Positions 32,120 through 63,985 of a stretch of DNA of 64,000 bases are shown here, piece after piece. Every line of letters starts with the position of its first letter. Position 1 is the stretch's first letter. The notes beneath the pieces are model-generated. The model searched no databases, was not told where the DNA came from, and saw nothing but the letters and a program-made list of their open reading frames with translations. This DNA comes from Klebsormidium nitens. Taxonomy: Eukaryota > Plantae > Klebsormidiophyceae. The translations under genes and the position numbers were made by a program. The stretch is taken from positions 248,001 to 312,000 of the forward strand of contig DF236978.1 of NCBI GenBank assembly GCA_000708835.1, read 5' to 3'.

Positions 32120-32207
32120 TCTCGACAACCGGATTCGAACCAGTGACCTAAGGATTTTCTGTGCTAACGACTACAGTCCTCCGCTCTACCAACTGAGCTA
32201 TGTCGAG
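32120..32207 (-). tRNA. trnY-GUA: tRNA-Tyr (GUA) with 15-nt intron
   Basis: Acceptor stem CTCGACA/TGTCGAG plus discriminator A; D-arm TAGCTCAGTTGGTAGAGC; anticodon GTA at 32174-32172; intron 32170-32156 after position 37; T-arm GGTTCGAATCC; T5 terminator just downstream (32112-32108). Confidence 0.97.
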
Positions 32208-48400: not shown

Positions 48401-50266
48401 CAAAAGGTTTTTGCGACTGGTCTTGCCCTGTAAACGGTGGTCTTAGTGCTTTCGGGCTGTACCATTCTATGGGAAAGATCTGCAAGGCTATAACAGGATC
48501 TGAGGCAAACCGAAGCCTGCGACGGGGTTAGAAGACGATCTTGCGAGGGTCCTTACAAAAGAACTCTGCTTTTCATCAGACATTGGTTGAAAGGCAGGTC
48601 CTTGCTGTTTGGCAAAAAGCCTTTCACCGGATAATCGTACAATATCGGGACAGAGCTACGTTTCTTTGATGCACGGAGTCCCCACCTGCGTCTGCGTCTC
48701 CAACAGTCTCCTCTGCACCCCCTCCCTCTCCTCCGCTGCCGCTTTCAGCTTCGCCTCGCACGCCCGCTCCAGCGCCGTCCGAATGCTCTCCGCTTCGGAC
48801 GCCTTCCAGTCCGCCAGCTCCGTCCGGTGCGCCGCCCTGATGTTGTCCACTTTCAGCCTGTACTGCTTTTCCAGCACCGAGATCTGCTCCTGCAGTCTCG
48901 CCTCCAATTTCTGCAGCTTCTCCTCAGCTTTGCGTGGTGACGTCACGCTGAGCTGGATCTCCAGCTCGCGCACCTTCCGCTTGTACTCTTCCAGCTCCGC
49001 AGAGACCGTCTCCATCTTCTTCCGCATCGTGGTGTCAATCGCGAGGGCTGGAACACGCTTTGTCGGCGCGCTGGGTTCCGGTTTGGAACTCCTGTCACTA
49101 CTGTTGCTGCTACGCCTGCGACTGCTTCTGGCTGACTCCGTGATGCTCTGTTTCCGCCCTGACCTGACTGTAGGTGGAGCCAAGCTCTGTCCACCTTTGA
49201 GGGGTTGCTGAACCTTCCCTAGACCTGCCGTGCTTGACACACCCGCTTCTGCCCAGTCTTGACCGTCCCCTGCGCCCACCCCGGTGTCATTTCCCAACGC
49301 CCCTAAGAAAAGGTGAGGAAGCACCGGCCGACATATGGCTGCTCTTTGCTCAAAGTCTCCATCTTTTCCCGCTTGTCCTGCTTGCTGACTCACTTTCCTC
49401 ACTGTCTTCCCAAATTTACCTCTCGCAACGCCATCCCCAATGCCAGACACTTCTTCTCTACCCGCTGCCAAAGGTTCTGCCACATTCGCCTTCCTCTCAT
49501 TGATTCCGTCAATAACCACACCCCCGATGTCACCTGCATCAGTGGCACCTGCTCCCCTTGTCTCAGCAACCATGGCCCGCAGTCTCTGCTGCACATCTCC
49601 ATCTAGCTCAGGATTGGTCCGGACACCGCTCAGTTTCTCAACAAAGTCCTTGTCCAAGAGAAGCTTCAAGTCCTGGTGCATTTCTGGGAAGAGCGTCTCC
49701 AGAAGCTGCTCAGGGTCCACCTTTTCGTCCCTGGATCTCCTACTGCGCAGCGGTTGCCATCCTACAATCGTCTCTCTGGCCGTCCTGGGCCCCCTCTGTG
49801 TGGTGCTCTTGAAGGCCGAAGTGGCAGATCGAGCACTCAATGATTGGGCCCGCTCTCGGTCTGGCAGCTTGTTCAGCTGACCCAGCTTCAGCAGGGGAAC
49901 CTTCACCCCCGCCGAGTCCGTCGCTGGAATGTGTGGGAGCGTCGCCTCACTGCTTCTCGCTTCCTTCCCTGACTGCGCCATGTCATCTTCAGCACCACCT
50001 GATGCTGCTGCAACCCTCCGTTCCTTCAAAAAGGGGGCGGGATCAAAATGGGGCTTTGCTGAGCTCCCTTCGTTATAGACAGTTCGAGCTGTCACTTTTT
50101 CCTCTGCGACGCCCCTGAAATGGATGCTGGGGGGAAACCCTTTCGCAGCACCGCCAAAGGCTGCTTCTGCTCGTTTTCGAGCCTGAATGCGGTGATGAGC
50201 AACAGGGTCCGAGCAATGCTCTGGGGGGCAGTACGCATTAGGATCTGGACACCCGTGCCAGTCCAT
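45461..50266 (-). CDS. Large low-complexity/coiled-coil protein of unknown function, ~812 aa
   Basis: Exons 50266-48686, 48310-48122, 47508-47380, 46750-46497, 45746-45461 are all phase-compatible (2439 nt). E/K/L/R-rich heptad region (METVSAELEEYKRKVRELEIQL...LERELLELQ). The start is uncertain and no family was recognised. Confidence 0.75.
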
Positions 50267-57107: not shown

Positions 57108-59579
57108 TATGCCTTCTTAACGTTGTCTCCAGCCTCAGCGTTCAAACAAAGAACGGAAACGAGAGCCGAACTTGGCCATCATTGGCCATCAATTGCGTGC
57201 ATAGATCCCCTAAAATCTTTCTCCACAAGATCAAAAACGGCCCTTGAATCGTAGTTGCTTCCAGAGCTTTGCTGATTGCTGTTTAAGAAAGTTCATCCCT
57301 TTGCTGAAACGTTGTACTTTCCTCTGTGCACATATCTCAAGCTTAAGATCGGAGACGCGGAGCTGCGGATGCGCAATCTGGTGCCAAGCCAAGTGTTTCT
57401 CCTCCCTGATCAGGAGCGCCTGAGCATCAATGCAGAGCCAGACTTGTAGCTCAATTCCTCATATCCTTAGGAAAGATGCTTGTGATCAGCTTCGTTCAAT
57501 CTTTATTTGAAAGTACTGGCGGGAGATGACGGGATTGGCGCTCCTTCGGGCGTCTGAAATGCACCGGCTAGACTCGCTCTTCTAGTTGCGTCCGAATCGG
57601 GCTCGGGCAGTGGTCCGGGCGTACGTACGACTTGTCGGACAGCTCGATGACGCAATCCGGTTACACTTGTCTGCACCAGGAGCATACTAAGAGCTAGAGT
57701 CCTGCTAATATGTCAGAAGCAAGAGCTGGAAGCCTGACCCCAAATGATCTGCTGCCATCGAAGCTTCGAATTTGTCCTCTGTTGATAATATTTCAGTCAT
57801 ATTACAACAATGATGTTCACATTCCATATGTTGAAACATGCATGTAACGTGAGGGCCTATTTAAGCTGTCAGCAACGTATCTGTCGTCATGCTCGAAATA
57901 CGTCTCTCCAGGCAAGATGACGTCAGCGATTCCACAGTCAGTTCGTGAAGTCGCTGATGACTGCTACGTATACATACTGTCACAGTCAGTCAGCTGTCCA
58001 ATTTTTGAACACAGTTTGCAACTCCCCCAGCATTCAAGACATCAAGATCGAAGCAAACTGCTCCAGCAATCGCCTGCGGATTTAACCGCTTGCGAAAGGA
58101 ATGGACAAGCGACGGGTTTTCTTGGTTCCTGGGAATCAACTACGGTGACCCACATCCTATCTGATAAGGCCTCCGTTTTCTGCGGCAGATTTGTGAGTTG
58201 ATGGATCAGTGGTTTTTCCACCCAGCCGATGTCTGCAAGGTGAGGGCTGAGAATTTGTGTGGATCAGTGTCCGAAGTTGACTGGGGCCAGATCCTAATAA
58301 CTCACGTGCGAAACTCTGAGATCACACTGGAAACTTAGCAACTTCAGGACGTATGTCTCTGTCGAACAGCGGATTGCCAAGTGTCATCATAAGCCGGCCG
58401 CGCCGCAGACCATTATTGGGCCTGAAAGCTAATAGGCCAGTCAGTCTGTGGGAGGCCCACAATACTGAAACGCGGCCTCCTGATGTATCCGAACCAAGGT
58501 GAGAAGCTTCAGTCTGCATACCTCAAACCGCAAATCTGCTTTGAAGGTATCAGAATACTTCAGGTCTGGATTTATCTGGCAATCTTTTTCTTTCTGTCAG
58601 CCGTCAGTGTCTTTCATATCTAATATATATAGATCCGGCGCACTGAAAGTCTGCTGTTCGTACGCGTCCGACACCTAGTAGTCTGCTTCAATACCATCCA
58701 AAGGGCATCACCCTTTGTTCTAATCTCACACGCGACGCTGTGCTTTCGAGACCATTTCGAACTCTAATTGGAGGCCCACATGACGTGTTGGCAGTACTAC
58801 GTGACATTCGCAAATGAGATGCTCAAACTGGGTCGAGAAATGACGGTATACATACGGAAGCTGGCCGGCTGGCGGGCTGGCGACGACTCAAGACGGTGCA
58901 AGCGGACGGCCGGTACGAACGTGCAGACACGAGAGAAGAGATATCTATGGATGAATAGATTGCGAAGACGAGGAACGAACTCAGAGGCCGCTTGAACGTC
59001 TGGTTTGTTGGCGTCAAGGGAGCAGAAAGGTACTGCCGGGCCACCTTGACATCAACTAGGACTGGCAACCCGTTGGCAATATTTTAATTTTTAAGCTGCA
59101 AGGAGTACGACGTATCACACGAAATTTTCAATGCAACGGAGGCACATGACTAGGATGTTCATCTCACTCTTTCTAGACGTTTCGCGTGACCTCTTCAGTT
59201 GACGAATATGGGGCGTGTTAGAGTTCGTGCGTCTGTGACGCCTGTGTGACGTCTGTGACGCACGATTTTCTGTTCGAACAGAAAGATTCAGAAATTGGCC
59301 GGCAGCTTTGCTACACGGCAAACTGCGGATTTGCGCTCGGGGTAGATGATCACAGTGCTCGGCCAAACATGTGGCCGTGGAAGCTTGGCGCCCATATAGT
59401 GTAATACGTGCTTTCCGCCAAATTAGCTCTTCAATCGAATGGCTCAATCGGCGGCCTGTTGACAACATCAACCGGCGGCTTCCAGCTCGAGCTCCCTTGT
59501 GGCTTGCAATTGAAACTCGTTCTGTTGCGGAAGAAAGTCTCTGCACACCATCATCACAACATGACCTCAGCAGGCAGCG

Positions 59580-59700
59580 CCGCACGTGTCCTGCCGGCCG
59601 CGGCCGGGCGCCGCGCGCCCGAATTGAATGCGGCCCGGCGATCGGACGGTCCCATCTCCGACCGTACAACCACCAATCGGTCCAATGATTGGCGGGGATG
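59580..59700 (+). promoter_or_regulatory. Putative Pol II promoter of the GNAT gene: ABRE/G-box, GC-rich block, CCAAT boxes
   Basis: CACGTGTC at 59583-59590, GC-rich GCCGGCCGCGGCCGGGCGCCGCGCGCCC, and ACCAATCGG plus palindromic CCAATGATTGG at ~59673-59693. Motif match only. Confidence 0.4.
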
Positions 59701-60272
59701 ATTGACGAACTGGATTCCCCGGGTCCGGTTTGTGAACAATTTGCCGCTCCGCGTGGTGACCGGTAGACGTCCCTCGGATGCTTCAGCGATGATAGCGGAT
59801 CAAATGATTCCAGTATCGGACCTGCGGTCGTCATCTCGTCACCATCTGGACTCAGGTAAGATGGAATGTTGCAATGCGGTGACATCGACTACCTTATGTC
59901 GGCCTCCTCTCCCTTGAGTACACCGTGACCGAGAACCTGCAGAAATTCGCTCTGGGTGAGCTCTGGGGCAGCTTTTCAGCTTTCTTGGCGCGCTGCCCTT
60001 TCCAGGATAAGAAGGTCGCTTTTCTGGAATACAGGCCGCTTGGCAACTGGTGGTCCTTCAAGGTCAATAGCAACATCAGTGCAAGACAGATTGGGTTGGT
60101 TCACAACAGTGATTGCGACAGCTCTGTGAGCAACGACACCGATTCTTTCGCTTATCAGTGTAATAAAATGCTGCAGCTTCCCTCCTTGCCTCAGTGTTGC
60201 TCTCAATACAAGCACCTGTACAAAAGCTGCTGAGATCTAACTGCAAGGAAGCTCCCTTGTAACATATTGTAG

Positions 60273-61004
60273 ATGTTGCCGAGTAAGCGTTTGTCAGAAC
60301 AAAAAATGGACCGCTACAATGTCAAGATCTTGTCCGACGGCCCTGATCTAGATGCTGCGCTGGCACTGCTGTATAACGTGTACGTCAAGGAGATGAAATG
60401 GAAACCAGACCCACGCAACCCTGCGCGCATCAGAATCGACGGCAATCGGTTGGTTGACTCTAGGGATCAGTTTGCCACCTACTTTGGGCTCTTTGAAGGC
60501 GGCGAGCTTGCCGCGTGCTGCCGGATCTGCGCTCCATGGAATGGACGGTTTGAAGTGCAGTGCTACAACGTGGCAGCGGACTTGTCGATCCTTGACAACA
60601 TGGAGAATCTTGTGGAGCTCAACAGGCTGGCCGTGCGCAGAGTGTCAAGGGGGCGCGGGTGCATTCTCAGGCTCCTCATTGGGGTGGCGACATACTGCAG
60701 GGACAGGGGCCTCATGATTGTGGGCGGGCCGGCATCCCCGGTTGTTATCCATATTTTGAAGAAGATTCAGTGGCCCGTCGTGGAAGGCTGCACCTTCAAG
60801 TATGAGAGCAAGGACCCTTTTGTTTGCCAGCTCTTCCTTGTGACGAGCGCGGATCAGATAAATAGGTCCATAGCCATCGCGTCTCAATTGGTAGCGGAGA
60901 AAGAGGCTCGAACGAGAACGAGGGGTTTTGCAAGCGCACGGACCGTTCTGCAGAAGTTTTGGTGGAACATCATGGTACTGATAAGTACGTGGTATAAGAG
61001 CTAG
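60273..61004 (+). CDS. GNAT-fold LuxI/FeeM-like acyltransferase (acyl-homoserine-lactone / N-acyl amino acid synthase superfamily), intronless CDS, 232-243 aa
   Basis: Single ORF with the spacing of autoinducer-synthase motifs: LLYNVYVKEMKW (cf. LRYxVFxxxLGW), LVDSRD (cf. ExDxxD), TYFGLFEGGELAACCRI (cf. GCxRL), LVELNRLAV (cf. WELSRFAV), then LRLLIGVATYCRDRG. The ATG at 60306 has the better context (AAAAAATGG). Confidence 0.8.
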   Translation: MLPSKRLSEQKMDRYNVKILSDGPDLDAALALLYNVYVKEMKWKPDPRNPARIRIDGNRLVDSRDQFATYFGLFEGGELAACCRICAPWNGRFEVQCYNVAADLSILDNMENLVELNRLAVRRVSRGRGCILRLLIGVATYCRDRGLMIVGGPASPVVIHILKKIQWPVVEGCTFKYESKDPFVCQLFLVTSADQINRSIAIASQLVAEKEARTRTRGFASARTVLQKFWWNIMVLISTWYKS

Positions 61005-61289
61005 ATGAGGTCGATTCGCAAGATCATTGACAAGGCAGCCAGATCGCAATTGGACCAAAACAAATGGGTTCCGTCAGACCTTTGGCACTGGGCCTGTGAT
61101 TGAAGCTAGAGGTCTAGAGGTGCTGAGTCAGATTTTGACTGGCTTTTACGAACTTGGAAGACAATAAATCTCTGTACCATCGATATACAACAAGTGACCA
61201 TCTATATACAAATCCAGAATATGATCATTAAGCTGTTCCAATTGGGCAATTTACTATGAAGCTACTGGATCGTCCTCGAGTTGCGTACA

Positions 61290-61620
61290 CGACCAATGAA
61301 CAGCGATATAATCAAGTGCGGCCTTATAGGCGTCCGACAGTACCACATGGTGCCGGCCGGGGCACATTGTACTAAGTATGTCACCTATGTTCAGCTACCA
61401 CTGTGACAGCTTATATGCCGCGCGACCGACTCTGTGTAGGCTTCGCTATGAATCGATACAATATCCACACGGGGGCACATACACCCGGCCGCGCGCGGCT
61501 GCATCTAGCTGCGTAATTAAGTATGCAAATTATAACACGCATTCTGTACGGACCGTGTATTTAGCCCGAGACCGGGGCCCACGCCTTATAGGCATCGTTA
61601 ACTAATAATGATGAGTCCAC
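61290..61620. other. Intergenic RY-alternating island between convergent 3' ends (GNAT / PAT10)
   Basis: Hand count over 61441-61560: 39/119 RR+YY steps (33%). CCGGCCGG at 61353-61360. Confidence 0.65.
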
Positions 61621-61837
61621 GGTGAATGGAAGTGCATAGCCATGCCTACTGTTGATCCAATTGAACGATCGGAAGTCATGATTCCAGAGCCGTCTGACCT
61701 TTGGAGAAAGGAGACAACACCCTTCAGATCCGGAAATAGGCATCCAGGTAGATCCGTGTTTTTTCGCTTGCTTCTTGTTTGTCTATATGCGGGCTATGAT
61801 TAAGTATGTGGTGGTAATGTTACAAAGGCGGCCTTAG

Positions 61838-63718
61838 TCAGCAACAGCTATAGTAGTCGTTCTCGAGCCAAGTTGACGTCACGGACCGCTCCCGCAACTC
61901 GTCAAGGCTCGGCAGCTCGTACACTGGCACGTTTGACGTGCTCGCGCAGCAAAATCTGGCGAGGTTAGTGGCGCACCCTTTACTGAAGGGCGACACGTTG
62001 TCCGGAAGAGGCCTGAGGGAAGCAACAAACAAAGAAGGCATCAGATTTCGGCTTATGCCCAAAAAGAGAGCCGTTCAACGACCTTGGTCTTTAGACGAAG
62101 CGTTTGGAACTTTGGGCCCCGGGGTCAACCGGCCCGTCGACGTTTCCGTCTACCGATTGCCCTAGGTTCGTCTCCCAAGCCGGGAGCATCTAGAGCCAGA
62201 AAAGACAAGCTAACGCACAGGCACCCAAAGAGGAGATCCCACGTAGAAGCAAGCAGAAAGATCGTTCACAAAGAGAGCCTTCAGCAGACGAGGTCCCCTG
62301 CTCCAATCTTTGCTGCGCCAAGGCCGTACAGAGGTATTTCCGTCCCTTACTTTGGAAAATTGGGAAACACAGAAACTACAAGAGCTGTAGCACTCGCTGA
62401 CGGTCTGGCCGGAATCAACTTGGCCTGGAATCAGGCTACCGTTGTTTTTGTGACTCCGTTCTCCTATCCTGGACCCTTGCAAGGCGGACCACGTGACCGG
62501 GAGCCTCACCTAAGATATGCTATTCGTTTTCGCCTGGTGGTTTCGTAAGTTGTTTGATCAGTCGCAGCCAGGTACCTGCAAGGAGTTGCGCAGATGACAT
62601 CACTCAGCGTCAGCGAGGCGGCGACAGCAAAGAACTACGTACAGACCGAGGTGTCGCAACCTGCGTCACACTTCTTTCAGCTACCTGCCCTTCAGGTGGA
62701 CATTCTTTCAAAAGCCCTCCTGAGTCAGATCGACTCGACTGGCCAGTAGCCTCGGACTTGGGGACACGATCCAGGAAATGCATTCGTGTTCTCTTCCAGA
62801 AAGCGCATCCACATGTGACAAGACTCGAACGAGTTGCGGGCACATTGTCCTTTCACGGTCCGACAGCGAACTCATCGTTGTCCACGACAAAGGGATTCCT
62901 CAGGCCCACGCAACCACGCTTCCCGAGCACCAAAGTTCGTCAAGCACAAAGAGCCGGCACAACGCGTTTGCGAGCTGCGCATAAGGGCATGATCTTTGAT
63001 AAACTCTGTAAGCCTCCTTCGTCTTCCGTCTTTCTTCTTCGTCTTCTCTGTCATCTGCTGACGTGACTTTGTTTTTCCTTGTTCTCATTCCTGCGCACGA
63101 TCCCGAAGAGTACTAAGATAAGTTGCCCGAAACTCACCCGTGAAAGACGAGCAACGCGACGAGGAAGATGAGGAAGCATATCAACGTGATGGTGTCCAGG
63201 ATCATAAACACGTTCAACGAGAACCTGCACACCGACGAGACGCACTGCGTAAGAGGTGACGCGAAACGCCTGAAAGAGATTGAAAGCTTCTGAGGAAGAA
63301 AGAACAGAGACTCGCACCGGGACACGGACCGTCCGCTGCACACGAGCCCTTGCTCTGGTCGTTCCAGTCGAGCGCCAGAAGAGAGTCCAGACGCCGAGGC
63401 AAGATTTGAACACTCAGGCTAAAGGCCGAAGTCAAAAGGAAAAACCAAAGCCACACGCCAATCTACGACCCGTCCCCTGCTCACCAGCCCTCGGTTTGGT
63501 CGTTCCAGTCGAGCGCCGACACGTTGATCGCGACGGTCCAGACGCCGAGGCAGGACTGGAAGAAGAGGTACCACCAGAAGCGGCGGTGGTTGCGGTAGCC
63601 GACGCAGGTGCCGACCCAGAAGCAGTGGTGGTCGAAGCGCAGCACGCAGCGGTCGCACTCGTGGCAGTGCTTCGTGCGCAGCGGCTGCCACACGCCGCAG
63701 TACGTGCACCGCTTGCCG
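61838..63718 (-). CDS. PAT10: DHHC protein S-acyltransferase PAT10-like, 3' four exons (5' part lies beyond the window)
   Basis: Exons 63718-63485, 63224-63138, 62575-62510, 62012-61838 are phase-consistent. CTYCGVWQPLRTKHCHECDRCVLRFDHHCFWVGTCVG, TTYE, RRKRIAYLR, PFSKG and the C-terminal CC match plant PAT10. Confidence 0.9.
63335..63400 (-). repeat. Intronic copy of the PAT10 DHHC-exon 3' end
   Basis: TGGTCGTTCCAGTCGAGCGCC and GTCCAGACGCCGAGGCA recur at ~63356-63402, copying ~63497-63553. Confidence 0.8.
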
Positions 63719-63808
63719 CTGCATAGCGGAAAGGGAATCGGTGTTGAAGGTGTCAAGTGAGGATGAGGGAGTTAATTTCTGGAGTGGATAAGCAGTCATT
63801 AAAGGGCC

Positions 63809-63985
63809 ACACGCCGCAGTACGTGCACCGCTTGCCGCTTGCCGCTGAGAAAGTGTGCGGGGAAAAACGAGTCCGGTACTTGATCGCCTGGTATTCTTTT
63901 CAGGAACTTGTGTAAGTGAGCGATGAAATGAGAATGTGTACTGGCGCGCCACGTGCTACAGTAGGTGCTCCGCTTGCCGCTGCAC
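63809..63985 (-). repeat. Two intronic copies of the PAT10 DHHC-exon acceptor and start
   Basis: CAG|CGGCAAGCGG(T/A)GCAC(G/C)TACTG copies start at 63844 and 63979; the functional exon starts at 63718. Confidence 0.85.

Follow-up and report, generated by a model that had tools for sequence, protein, structure and literature searches.

What does an acyltransferase gene of bacterial type do in the nuclear genome of a green alga, and how did it get there? The question is raised by an intact open reading frame (ORF) of 243 codons that opens with ATG at position 60273, ends at position 61004 of the plus strand, and is preceded directly by a TAG stop codon. It lies in a 64,000-nucleotide (nt) stretch of Klebsormidium nitens DNA (contig DF236978.1), which is referred to as the window. 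An earlier inspection of the letters alone (the sequence-only reading) had described it as an intronless, horizontally acquired gene for a LuxI/FeeM-like acyl synthase. The best explanation of the evidence presented here, to which we give a modest preference, is a real intronless nuclear gene that was acquired horizontally and encodes an acyl coenzyme A (acyl-CoA)-dependent synthase of N-acyl amino acids (lipoamino acids). The protein appears to be a divergent relative of the FeeM-type N-acyl amino acid synthases and is predicted to work alike.

An intronless, host-linked gene under purifying selection

Reads and contigs of public sequencing runs were placed on positions 58200-63900; contig evidence of this kind carries no expression level, strand, or exact transcript ends. 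An RNA-type contig of 1024 nt from run X5 is colinear with 60158-61181 without a gap or a difference, and the contigs of runs X7 and X8, each run belonging to a further study, match 59967-61149 with 100% identity. Taken together, the contigs of the three studies represent an unspliced transcript of approximately 1.0 to 1.2 kb over the acyltransferase ORF. X7 and X8 are filed under a second species label, yet they are 100% identical at the locus, and the two labels probably denote one strain or a renamed species. Coverage by the three RNA-type runs is zero at 58200-59918 and at 61256-61637, and since these flanks are uncovered, the RNA signal at the acyltransferase does not stem from a general carry-over of DNA. 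The minus-strand neighbor is spliced in these runs. Specifically, three GT..AG joints (62012-62508, 62574-63135, and 63223-63482) are present in the RNA-type runs and absent from the DNA run, and the spliced translation is a DHHC palmitoyltransferase (Pfam DHHC, E = 1.1e-24), the only neighboring gene identified and the one that the sequence-only reading had named. Its description of the 243-residue ORF as intronless likewise held, the ORF being intact and its RNA contigs free of gaps.

The start that is conserved is probably not the first ATG but the second (60306), which would give a protein of 232 residues. This start is favored because the ortholog described below has Met at this position, because DNA similarity begins there, and because the codon has A at -3 and G at +4. 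Within the RNA-covered 5' leader, an upstream ORF of 21 codons is present at 60168-60233 (plus strand); its end lies 40 nt ahead of the first main-ORF ATG, and translation may be dampened by it.

A 4.6-kb contig of a related species, from a separate sequencing run (L003), carries an ortholog with 81% protein identity. The last exon of the DHHC gene (92% DNA identity) comes after the ortholog with spacing and orientation unchanged, and the noncoding DNA between the two no longer aligns with the window. Between the window gene and the ortholog the synonymous divergence (dS) is 0.64, and the ratio of nonsynonymous to synonymous divergence (dN/dS) is 0.15; the acyltransferase is under purifying selection. 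Two metagenome contigs of approximately 81 kb from the Joint Genome Institute (JGI), derived from a more distant algal relative, contain the gene at L001:4249-4951 and L002:3710-4412 with a 1-nt insertion after about codon 138. The insertion splits the gene into two frames, the downstream DNA is still well conserved, and the C-terminal tail differs; the frame break may be recent or a shared assembly error.

This frame-breaking insertion after about residue 138 could be taken as a sign of decay, and the DNA run with a 20-kb contig spanning both the acyltransferase and the DHHC gene may itself be the source of the assembly. However, the DHHC linkage recurs in the independent assembly of another species, the RNA contigs of three studies match at 100% identity, dN/dS is 0.15, and all family-invariant residues are kept. 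A contaminant, a misassembly, or a decaying, nonfunctional insertion is already largely refuted and is extremely unlikely. The gene is not a contaminant, since it lacks introns, is transcribed, and shows physical linkage to a host gene that is spliced. We are nearly certain that the gene is real and expressed, and it is intronless, host-linked, and under purifying selection.

Family membership and predicted fold

In searches against Pfam, the window protein stayed below the cutoff of each of the three families that it approached: Acetyltransf_5 (21.5 versus 22.4 bits), Acetyltransf_1 (20.4 versus 20.7 bits), and FeeM (PF21926; 17.8 versus 27 bits). The profile of the LuxI family, Autoind_synth (PF00765), gave no match to it even at E ≤ 10, and a search of the PDB sequences with the window protein gave none either. 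The best NCBIfam match was the OlsB equivalog model NF052554 (E = 1.5e-5), with 24.9 bits versus a cutoff of 350 and about 53 core-motif residues aligned. Word-indexed protein searches returned only 2, 4, and 2 matches, those obtained with the window protein being two algal relatives. The index misses the FeeM-like subfamily, and an exhaustive HMMER search over 1.84 billion representatives was run instead; it found 240 relatives at E ≤ 1e-3 (representatives at the 50% identity level), 79 of them at E ≤ 1e-10.

The family alignment comprises 93 of the 240 relatives, and residue numbers given here are those of the 243-residue form. All near-invariant columns are kept in the window protein, namely Leu33, Tyr37, Trp43, Asn49, Asp62, and Arg84 and, further on, Glu94, Tyr98, Glu115, Arg118, Phe175, and Tyr177. 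The motif blocks pointed out in the sequence-only reading are all present, most of them on these columns. Acetyltransf_5 matches 54/93 relatives, FeeM matches 53/93 (at E ≤ 1e-3), and Autoind_synth matches one, weakly. Nearest relatives of the window protein pass the FeeM threshold, with P0003 (41.9 bits) and P0006 (35.8 bits) above the gathering score. In NCBIfam the relatives gave only sub-threshold matches, to OlsB models (19 to 20 of the 93), to exosortase-associated acyltransferase, and to LBL_2463. The best PDB sequence match of the family profile was the acetyltransferase SACOL1063 (E = 1e-5). On these scores, FeeM-type membership would hold only via the relatives, none of the curated families covers the FeeM-like subfamily, and the window protein belongs to this uncharacterized, mostly bacterial subfamily. 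More broadly, it is very probably a GNAT of the LuxI/FeeM/OlsB type.

AlphaFold was used to predict the structure. With the 93-sequence alignment, the model reached a predicted local distance difference test (pLDDT) value of 95.5 and a predicted template modeling (pTM) score of 0.87, superseding a single-sequence AlphaFold2 model with a pLDDT of 38. In the model of the 232-residue form, the GNAT core takes up approximately residues 1 to 181 and is followed by a single long C-terminal helix (residues 182 to 231) with a Trp-rich tail at its end. Superposition on PDB entries with VIA-align gave Z-scores of 18.1 for BjaI (5W8x; 181 residues), 17.5 for LasI (1RO5), 17.4 for RpaI (6WN0), and 17.1 for FeeM (2G0B; 172 residues). 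The first three are acyl-homoserine lactone (AHL) synthases, and two further ones, MesI and TofI (3P2F), are among the top matches. For FeeM, the root mean square deviation is 3.0 over 172/184 residues at approximately 15% identity (Foldseek E = 2.7e-7). Consistently, Foldseek ranked the best PDB structures in the same order; its PDB matches at E ≤ 0.001 number at least 482, of which the 50 listed are without exception GNAT-type acyl- or acetyltransferases. The Arg-Gly-x-Gly loop that follows the strand with Glu115 and Arg118 aligns with the pyrophosphate loop of CoA-bound SACOL1063, the last Gly/Ala of the classical GNAT loop motif being lost in the window protein.

The predicted fold is that of an extended LuxI/FeeM-type GNAT, which, together with the correspondence of the motifs, bears out the earlier class assignment. 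Small GNATs reach similar Z-scores (17.5 for SACOL1063), but over about 140 residues, whereas the LuxI/FeeM-type alignments extend over 172 to 181 residues and take in the N-terminal extension with its conserved Tyr, Trp, and Asp. This difference in aligned length, the N-terminal motif set typical of the LuxI/FeeM/OlsB group, and the scores of P0003 and P0006 above the FeeM gathering score make it unlikely that the protein is an ordinary short-chain GNAT, i.e., an enzyme that N-acetylates a small molecule or a protein with acetyl-CoA and makes no lipid product, even though the Acetyltransf_1 score lies near its threshold and SACOL1063 is both the best PDB sequence match of the family profile and a close structural match. 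Of the checks proposed with the sequence-only reading, the profile searches thus gave no Autoind_synth match and a FeeM score below threshold, and in the structural superposition BjaI, LasI, RpaI, and FeeM are tied at Z-scores of 17 to 18.

Predicted reaction and competing assignments

The motifs were mapped by HMMER alignment of the clade profile to BjaI, with LuxI residues in EsaI numbering. Equivalents of Trp34, Asp48 (Asp62), Arg68 (Arg84), Glu97 (Glu115), and Arg100 (Arg118) are kept. Arg24, which is essential in LuxI enzymes according to the mutagenesis literature on RhlI and LuxI, is replaced by Leu throughout the family, Phe28 by an invariant Tyr, and Ser99 by Asn117, and the positions of Glu43 and Asp45 are neither acidic nor conserved. 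Since the Arg24 equivalent is Leu and PF00765 gives no match, the window protein, judged by its sequence, is not a member of the LuxI family; identity to LuxI enzymes is 12 to 18%. A true AHL synthase, which would combine S-adenosylmethionine with an acyl thioester to yield, after lactonization, an AHL acting on bacterial LuxR receptors, is therefore very unlikely. It would fit the top structural matches, the five retained residues, the best viral structural match (a phage AHL synthase in BFVD), and the fusion or adjacency of bacterial relatives to PAS sensor kinases and to regulators with a LuxR-type helix-turn-helix (HTH; GerE), but Autoind_synth matches only one of the 93 relatives, the replaced and missing residues include Arg24, and the structural score of FeeM ties with those of the AHL synthases. 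Moreover, the retained residues would presumably be expected in FeeM-type, amino-acid-acylating enzymes also; they may form a pocket for an acceptor resembling an alpha-amino acid. The replacements and the absent profile match uphold the earlier caution that a product other than an AHL is no less likely.

An N-acyl amino acid or a similar lipoamide is the product that we propose, tentatively. In the reaction envisaged, a fatty acyl thioester, probably acyl-CoA, would be the donor, with its pantetheine arm at the retained Arg-Gly-x-Gly loop. An amino-acid-like amine would be positioned by the strand with the invariant Glu115 and Arg118 and by a pocket of Trp43, Asp62, and Arg84, and acyl transfer to the alpha-amino group would yield the N-acyl amino acid. 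The gene, its expression and linkage, the purifying selection, the fold, the conserved motifs, and the family distribution rest on data, whereas acyl donor and acceptor, product, and cellular location are inferred. The protein opens directly with strand 1 and lacks a transit or signal peptide, and because it carries no organelle-targeting extension, cytosolic acyl-CoA is a likelier donor than plastid acyl carrier protein (ACP) thioesters. Precedents for such a donor exist: TyzA of M. tuberculosis, which is FeeM/BjaI-like, uses C12-CoA to acylate tyrosine to N-acyl tyrosine (PMC10404671), and the BjaI clade is CoA-dependent (PMC4234381). BjaI and RpaI use acyl-CoA, a donor available to a cytosolic eukaryotic enzyme.

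The Trp-rich tail at the end of the C-terminal helix, kept in the ortholog P0001, may hold the enzyme at a membrane. The sequence-only reading had noted a hydrophobic C-terminal tail, and this is real and conserved, but it does not qualify as a membrane span. A full span (tail anchor) was considered and rejected, the tail being too short at 13 residues and the best 19-residue hydropathy low, with no 19-residue stretch reaching transmembrane-like values. An interfacial membrane anchor is our guess for its role.

A hydrophobic tail that suggests work at a membrane would also suit an OlsB-like aminolipid synthase, which N-acylates ornithine, lysine, glycine, or a similar amine in the first step toward a phosphorus-free membrane lipid. 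OlsB (Acetyltransf_5; NF052554 and NF052555) supplies the best NCBIfam and the best Pfam match of the window protein, OlsB models match 19 to 20 of the 93 relatives, and OlsB belongs to the same structural group as the window protein, an OlsB-named cluster being among the ESM Atlas structural neighbors. The NCBIfam match is confined to the core motif and far below its cutoff, however, and judged by it the window protein is not an OlsB equivalog; the identified neighbor is a DHHC palmitoyltransferase and not an OlsA-like O-acyltransferase, no OlsA-type partner being seen at the window locus; and bacterial family members adjoin regulators and sensor kinases, not lipid-synthesis genes. Altogether, an OlsB-like function is quite unlikely.

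Origin of the gene and coupling of its bacterial relatives to sensors

The closest non-algal relatives are four proteins of Basidiobolus meristosporus (ORX93482.1 and paralogs; 41 to 42% identity), to which UniProt assigns a FeeM catalytic core domain. Like the algal protein they are standalone, of similar size, and eukaryotic; unlike it, they lack the Trp-rich tail, and their genes are multicopy. Next come a protein of the myxobacterium Pyxidicoccus (P. caerfyrddinensis WP_163993469.1; 36% identity) and then proteins from metagenome-assembled genomes (MAGs) of Burkholderiales, other labeled members being from Candidatus Magnetomorum and a gammaproteobacterial MAG. Bacterial members of this kind share 27 to 36% identity over the whole domain and the same near-invariant residues. 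After the algal lineage, the next match is 42% identical. Labeled members are all bacterial apart from the window alga, two related algal contigs, and some fungi; none of the approximately 35 relatives with a label is labeled as a plant, most matches being without taxonomy. The gene contexts retrieved are bacterial (P0006, P0008, P0154, P0156, P0016, P0029, and P0044) or fungus-like (P0073 and P0081, beside HET-domain and Peroxidase_2 genes and with many short unannotated calls), apart from that of P0069, which is uninformative. On two fungus-like metagenome contigs (L008:3631-10522 and L007:4938-6522) the homologs have an N-terminal extension of approximately 50 to 60 residues; one fungus-like homolog lies between two HET-domain (heterokaryon incompatibility) genes and another beside a haem-thiolate peroxidase (Peroxidase_2).

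In a 50-row tree, the algal pair, Basidiobolus, P0073/P0081, and two bacterial rows are found on one side of a 91/84 branch. The interleaving of bacterial rows among the eukaryote rows in this tree was considered and dropped as not robust: in the approximately unbiased (AU) test a single clade of all eukaryote rows was not rejected (p = 0.68), and the constrained tree was slightly better than the free search. In a tree rooted with more distant FeeM-like domains fused to cyclic nucleotide monophosphate (cNMP)-binding domains as the outgroup, the eukaryote rows formed one clade (Shimodaira-Hasegawa-like approximate likelihood ratio test [SH-aLRT], 89), with the algal pair as sister to Basidiobolus (87). 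This clade lay within bacterial rows, with only two supported backbone nodes (86 and 91), the rest being weak. A foreign origin of the algal gene is likely. Vertical descent with massive loss fits poorly because the eukaryotic members form three isolated patches. Our own reading is that the family is bacterial and reached eukaryotes once or a few times, the algal copy deriving either from a fungus or from some bacterium near the fungal donors; a large number of gene transfers from bacteria has been reported for Basidiobolus (PMC7466969). Of the horizontal acquisition claimed earlier, foreign origin is thus retained as likely, whereas direct descent from bacteria is not, the nearest relatives being fungal and a single eukaryotic clade not being rejected. 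A giant-virus route was also considered and rejected: the top feature cluster in the ESM Atlas is 55% Nucleocytoviricota, but there was no support elsewhere. A scan of IMG/VR found no relative of the window protein, BFVD contained only the phage AHL synthase and weak giant-virus GNATs, and none of the retrieved contexts is viral.

Many bacterial members are fused to PAS and histidine kinase domains (e.g., those of the Burkholderiales MAGs), to PAS and LuxR-type HTH domains, or to cNMP-binding domains, whereas the algal protein is standalone with a tail of its own. Of 150 listed relatives, 20 are longer than 400 residues. Seven fusions with an N-terminal GNAT domain were scanned, and PAS was found in all of them; a histidine-kinase ATPase domain is clearly added in P0014, P0021, and P0026, and in P0011 a LuxR-type HTH (GerE) takes the place of the kinase. 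Three other relatives carry an N-terminal cNMP-binding domain. Among the fusion proteins P0010, P0011, P0014, P0015, P0021, and P0026, some have a receiver domain as well. The gene for the standalone P0008 is followed after 19 nt by those for a PAS histidine kinase and a response regulator, and P0006 and P0016 adjoin GerE-type regulators; loci with sensor or regulator partners are L006:1320-5454, L005:1228-3290, and L011:2197-3776. The contexts of P0154 and P0156 showed no kinase or regulator partner, nor did the uninformative context of P0069.

The recurrent coupling to kinases and regulators suggests that the product in bacteria is a sensed small molecule, and what looks like a pairing of synthase and sensor is one for which no description was found. 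For the algal copy, nothing certain follows. It could be imagined that the subfamily is an undescribed class of acyl-signal synthases, of which the land-adapted alga and several fungi captured a copy, using it to produce a diffusible N-acyl signal by which bacterial neighbors are addressed or jammed; this we regard as improbable.

Several observations weigh against an acquired N-acyl amino acid synthase, the reading preferred here. With regard to the enzyme, all three Pfam scores of the window protein itself are sub-threshold, the predicted structure does not separate FeeM-like from LuxI-like (Z-scores tied within 1), and no known product was found for any subfamily member. FeeM differs further from the window protein, which has an extra C-terminal helix and a eukaryotic host, and next to whose gene no ACP, amino-acid-related partner, or biosynthetic cluster was found, the ORFs within approximately 10 kb having no Pfam match. 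With regard to origin, the GC content at third codon positions (GC3) is lower in the acyltransferase (0.69) than in the DHHC fragment (0.83), the sample being small; most family members are unlabeled metagenome proteins, so that unseen eukaryotic members are possible; with midpoint rooting of the 50-row tree, the set that contains the eukaryotes falls to one side of the root; and nesting within bacteria depends on the chosen outgroup, most backbone nodes being weak.

The features of the locus are collected in the table. Elsewhere in the window, Pfam scans of 14 long ORFs gave no match, the exons being short. A single tRNA gene is present at 32120-32207 on the minus strand (Rfam, 60.6 bits); with 88 nt it exceeds the 71-position model, and it may contain an intron or a long variable arm. 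An open frame of 536 codons at 48659-50266 on the minus strand, without a match in Pfam, lies where the window is most GC-rich and most skewed. It mostly has a low-complexity or disordered look, with a C-terminal part that is coiled-coil-like by eye, and probably represents a single large host-gene exon.

Table. Features of the acyltransferase locus in window coordinates
Feature	Position	Strand	Basis or remark
FeeM-like GNAT acyltransferase coding sequence, most likely form (232 residues + stop)	60306..61004	+	Start of ortholog P0001; DNA similarity to L003; dN/dS 0.15; AlphaFold2 pLDDT 95.5
N-terminal extension of 11 codons, possible if the first in-frame ATG is used	60273..60305	+	Not kept in ortholog; poor start context
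Unspliced transcript, minimum bounds	59967..61181	+	RNA-type contigs of X5, X7, and X8; no joints
AATAAA hexamer, candidate polyadenylation signal	61163..61168	+	Proposed from its place, 13 nt short of the final base in the longest RNA contig
Trp-rich hydrophobic C-terminal tail, 13 residues (F229-Y241 of the 243-residue form)	60957..60995	+	Kept in P0001; candidate interfacial membrane anchor
Core strand motif Val-Glu-Leu-Asn-Arg-Leu-Ala with family-invariant Glu115 and Arg118	60606..60626	+	Aligns with LuxI-type Glu97 and Arg100 (HMMER alignment to BjaI)
DHHC palmitoyltransferase gene, 3' part, spliced, tail-to-tail with the acyltransferase	61700..63721	-	Joints in three RNA-type runs; Pfam DHHC
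Exon ends/starts of the DHHC gene	62011; 62509-62573; 63136-63222; 63483	-	Joints in the RNA-type runs, none in the DNA run

In literature searches, no such gene was found described in an alga, and to our knowledge no bacterial-type synthase of lipoamino acids or acyl signals is known in eukaryotes. The host is an early-diverging streptophyte of soil crusts, where it lives among bacteria and fungi. If the enzyme is active, a streptophyte alga could make N-acyl amides itself, which would bear on signaling between algae and microbes and on the part of gene transfer in the move of plants to land. Beyond the alga, the gene points to a sizeable uncharacterized bacterial family, with 240 representatives at 50% identity, that is coupled to sensor kinases and LuxR-type regulators, and the chemistry of a single algal, fungal, or bacterial member could indicate that of the whole family.

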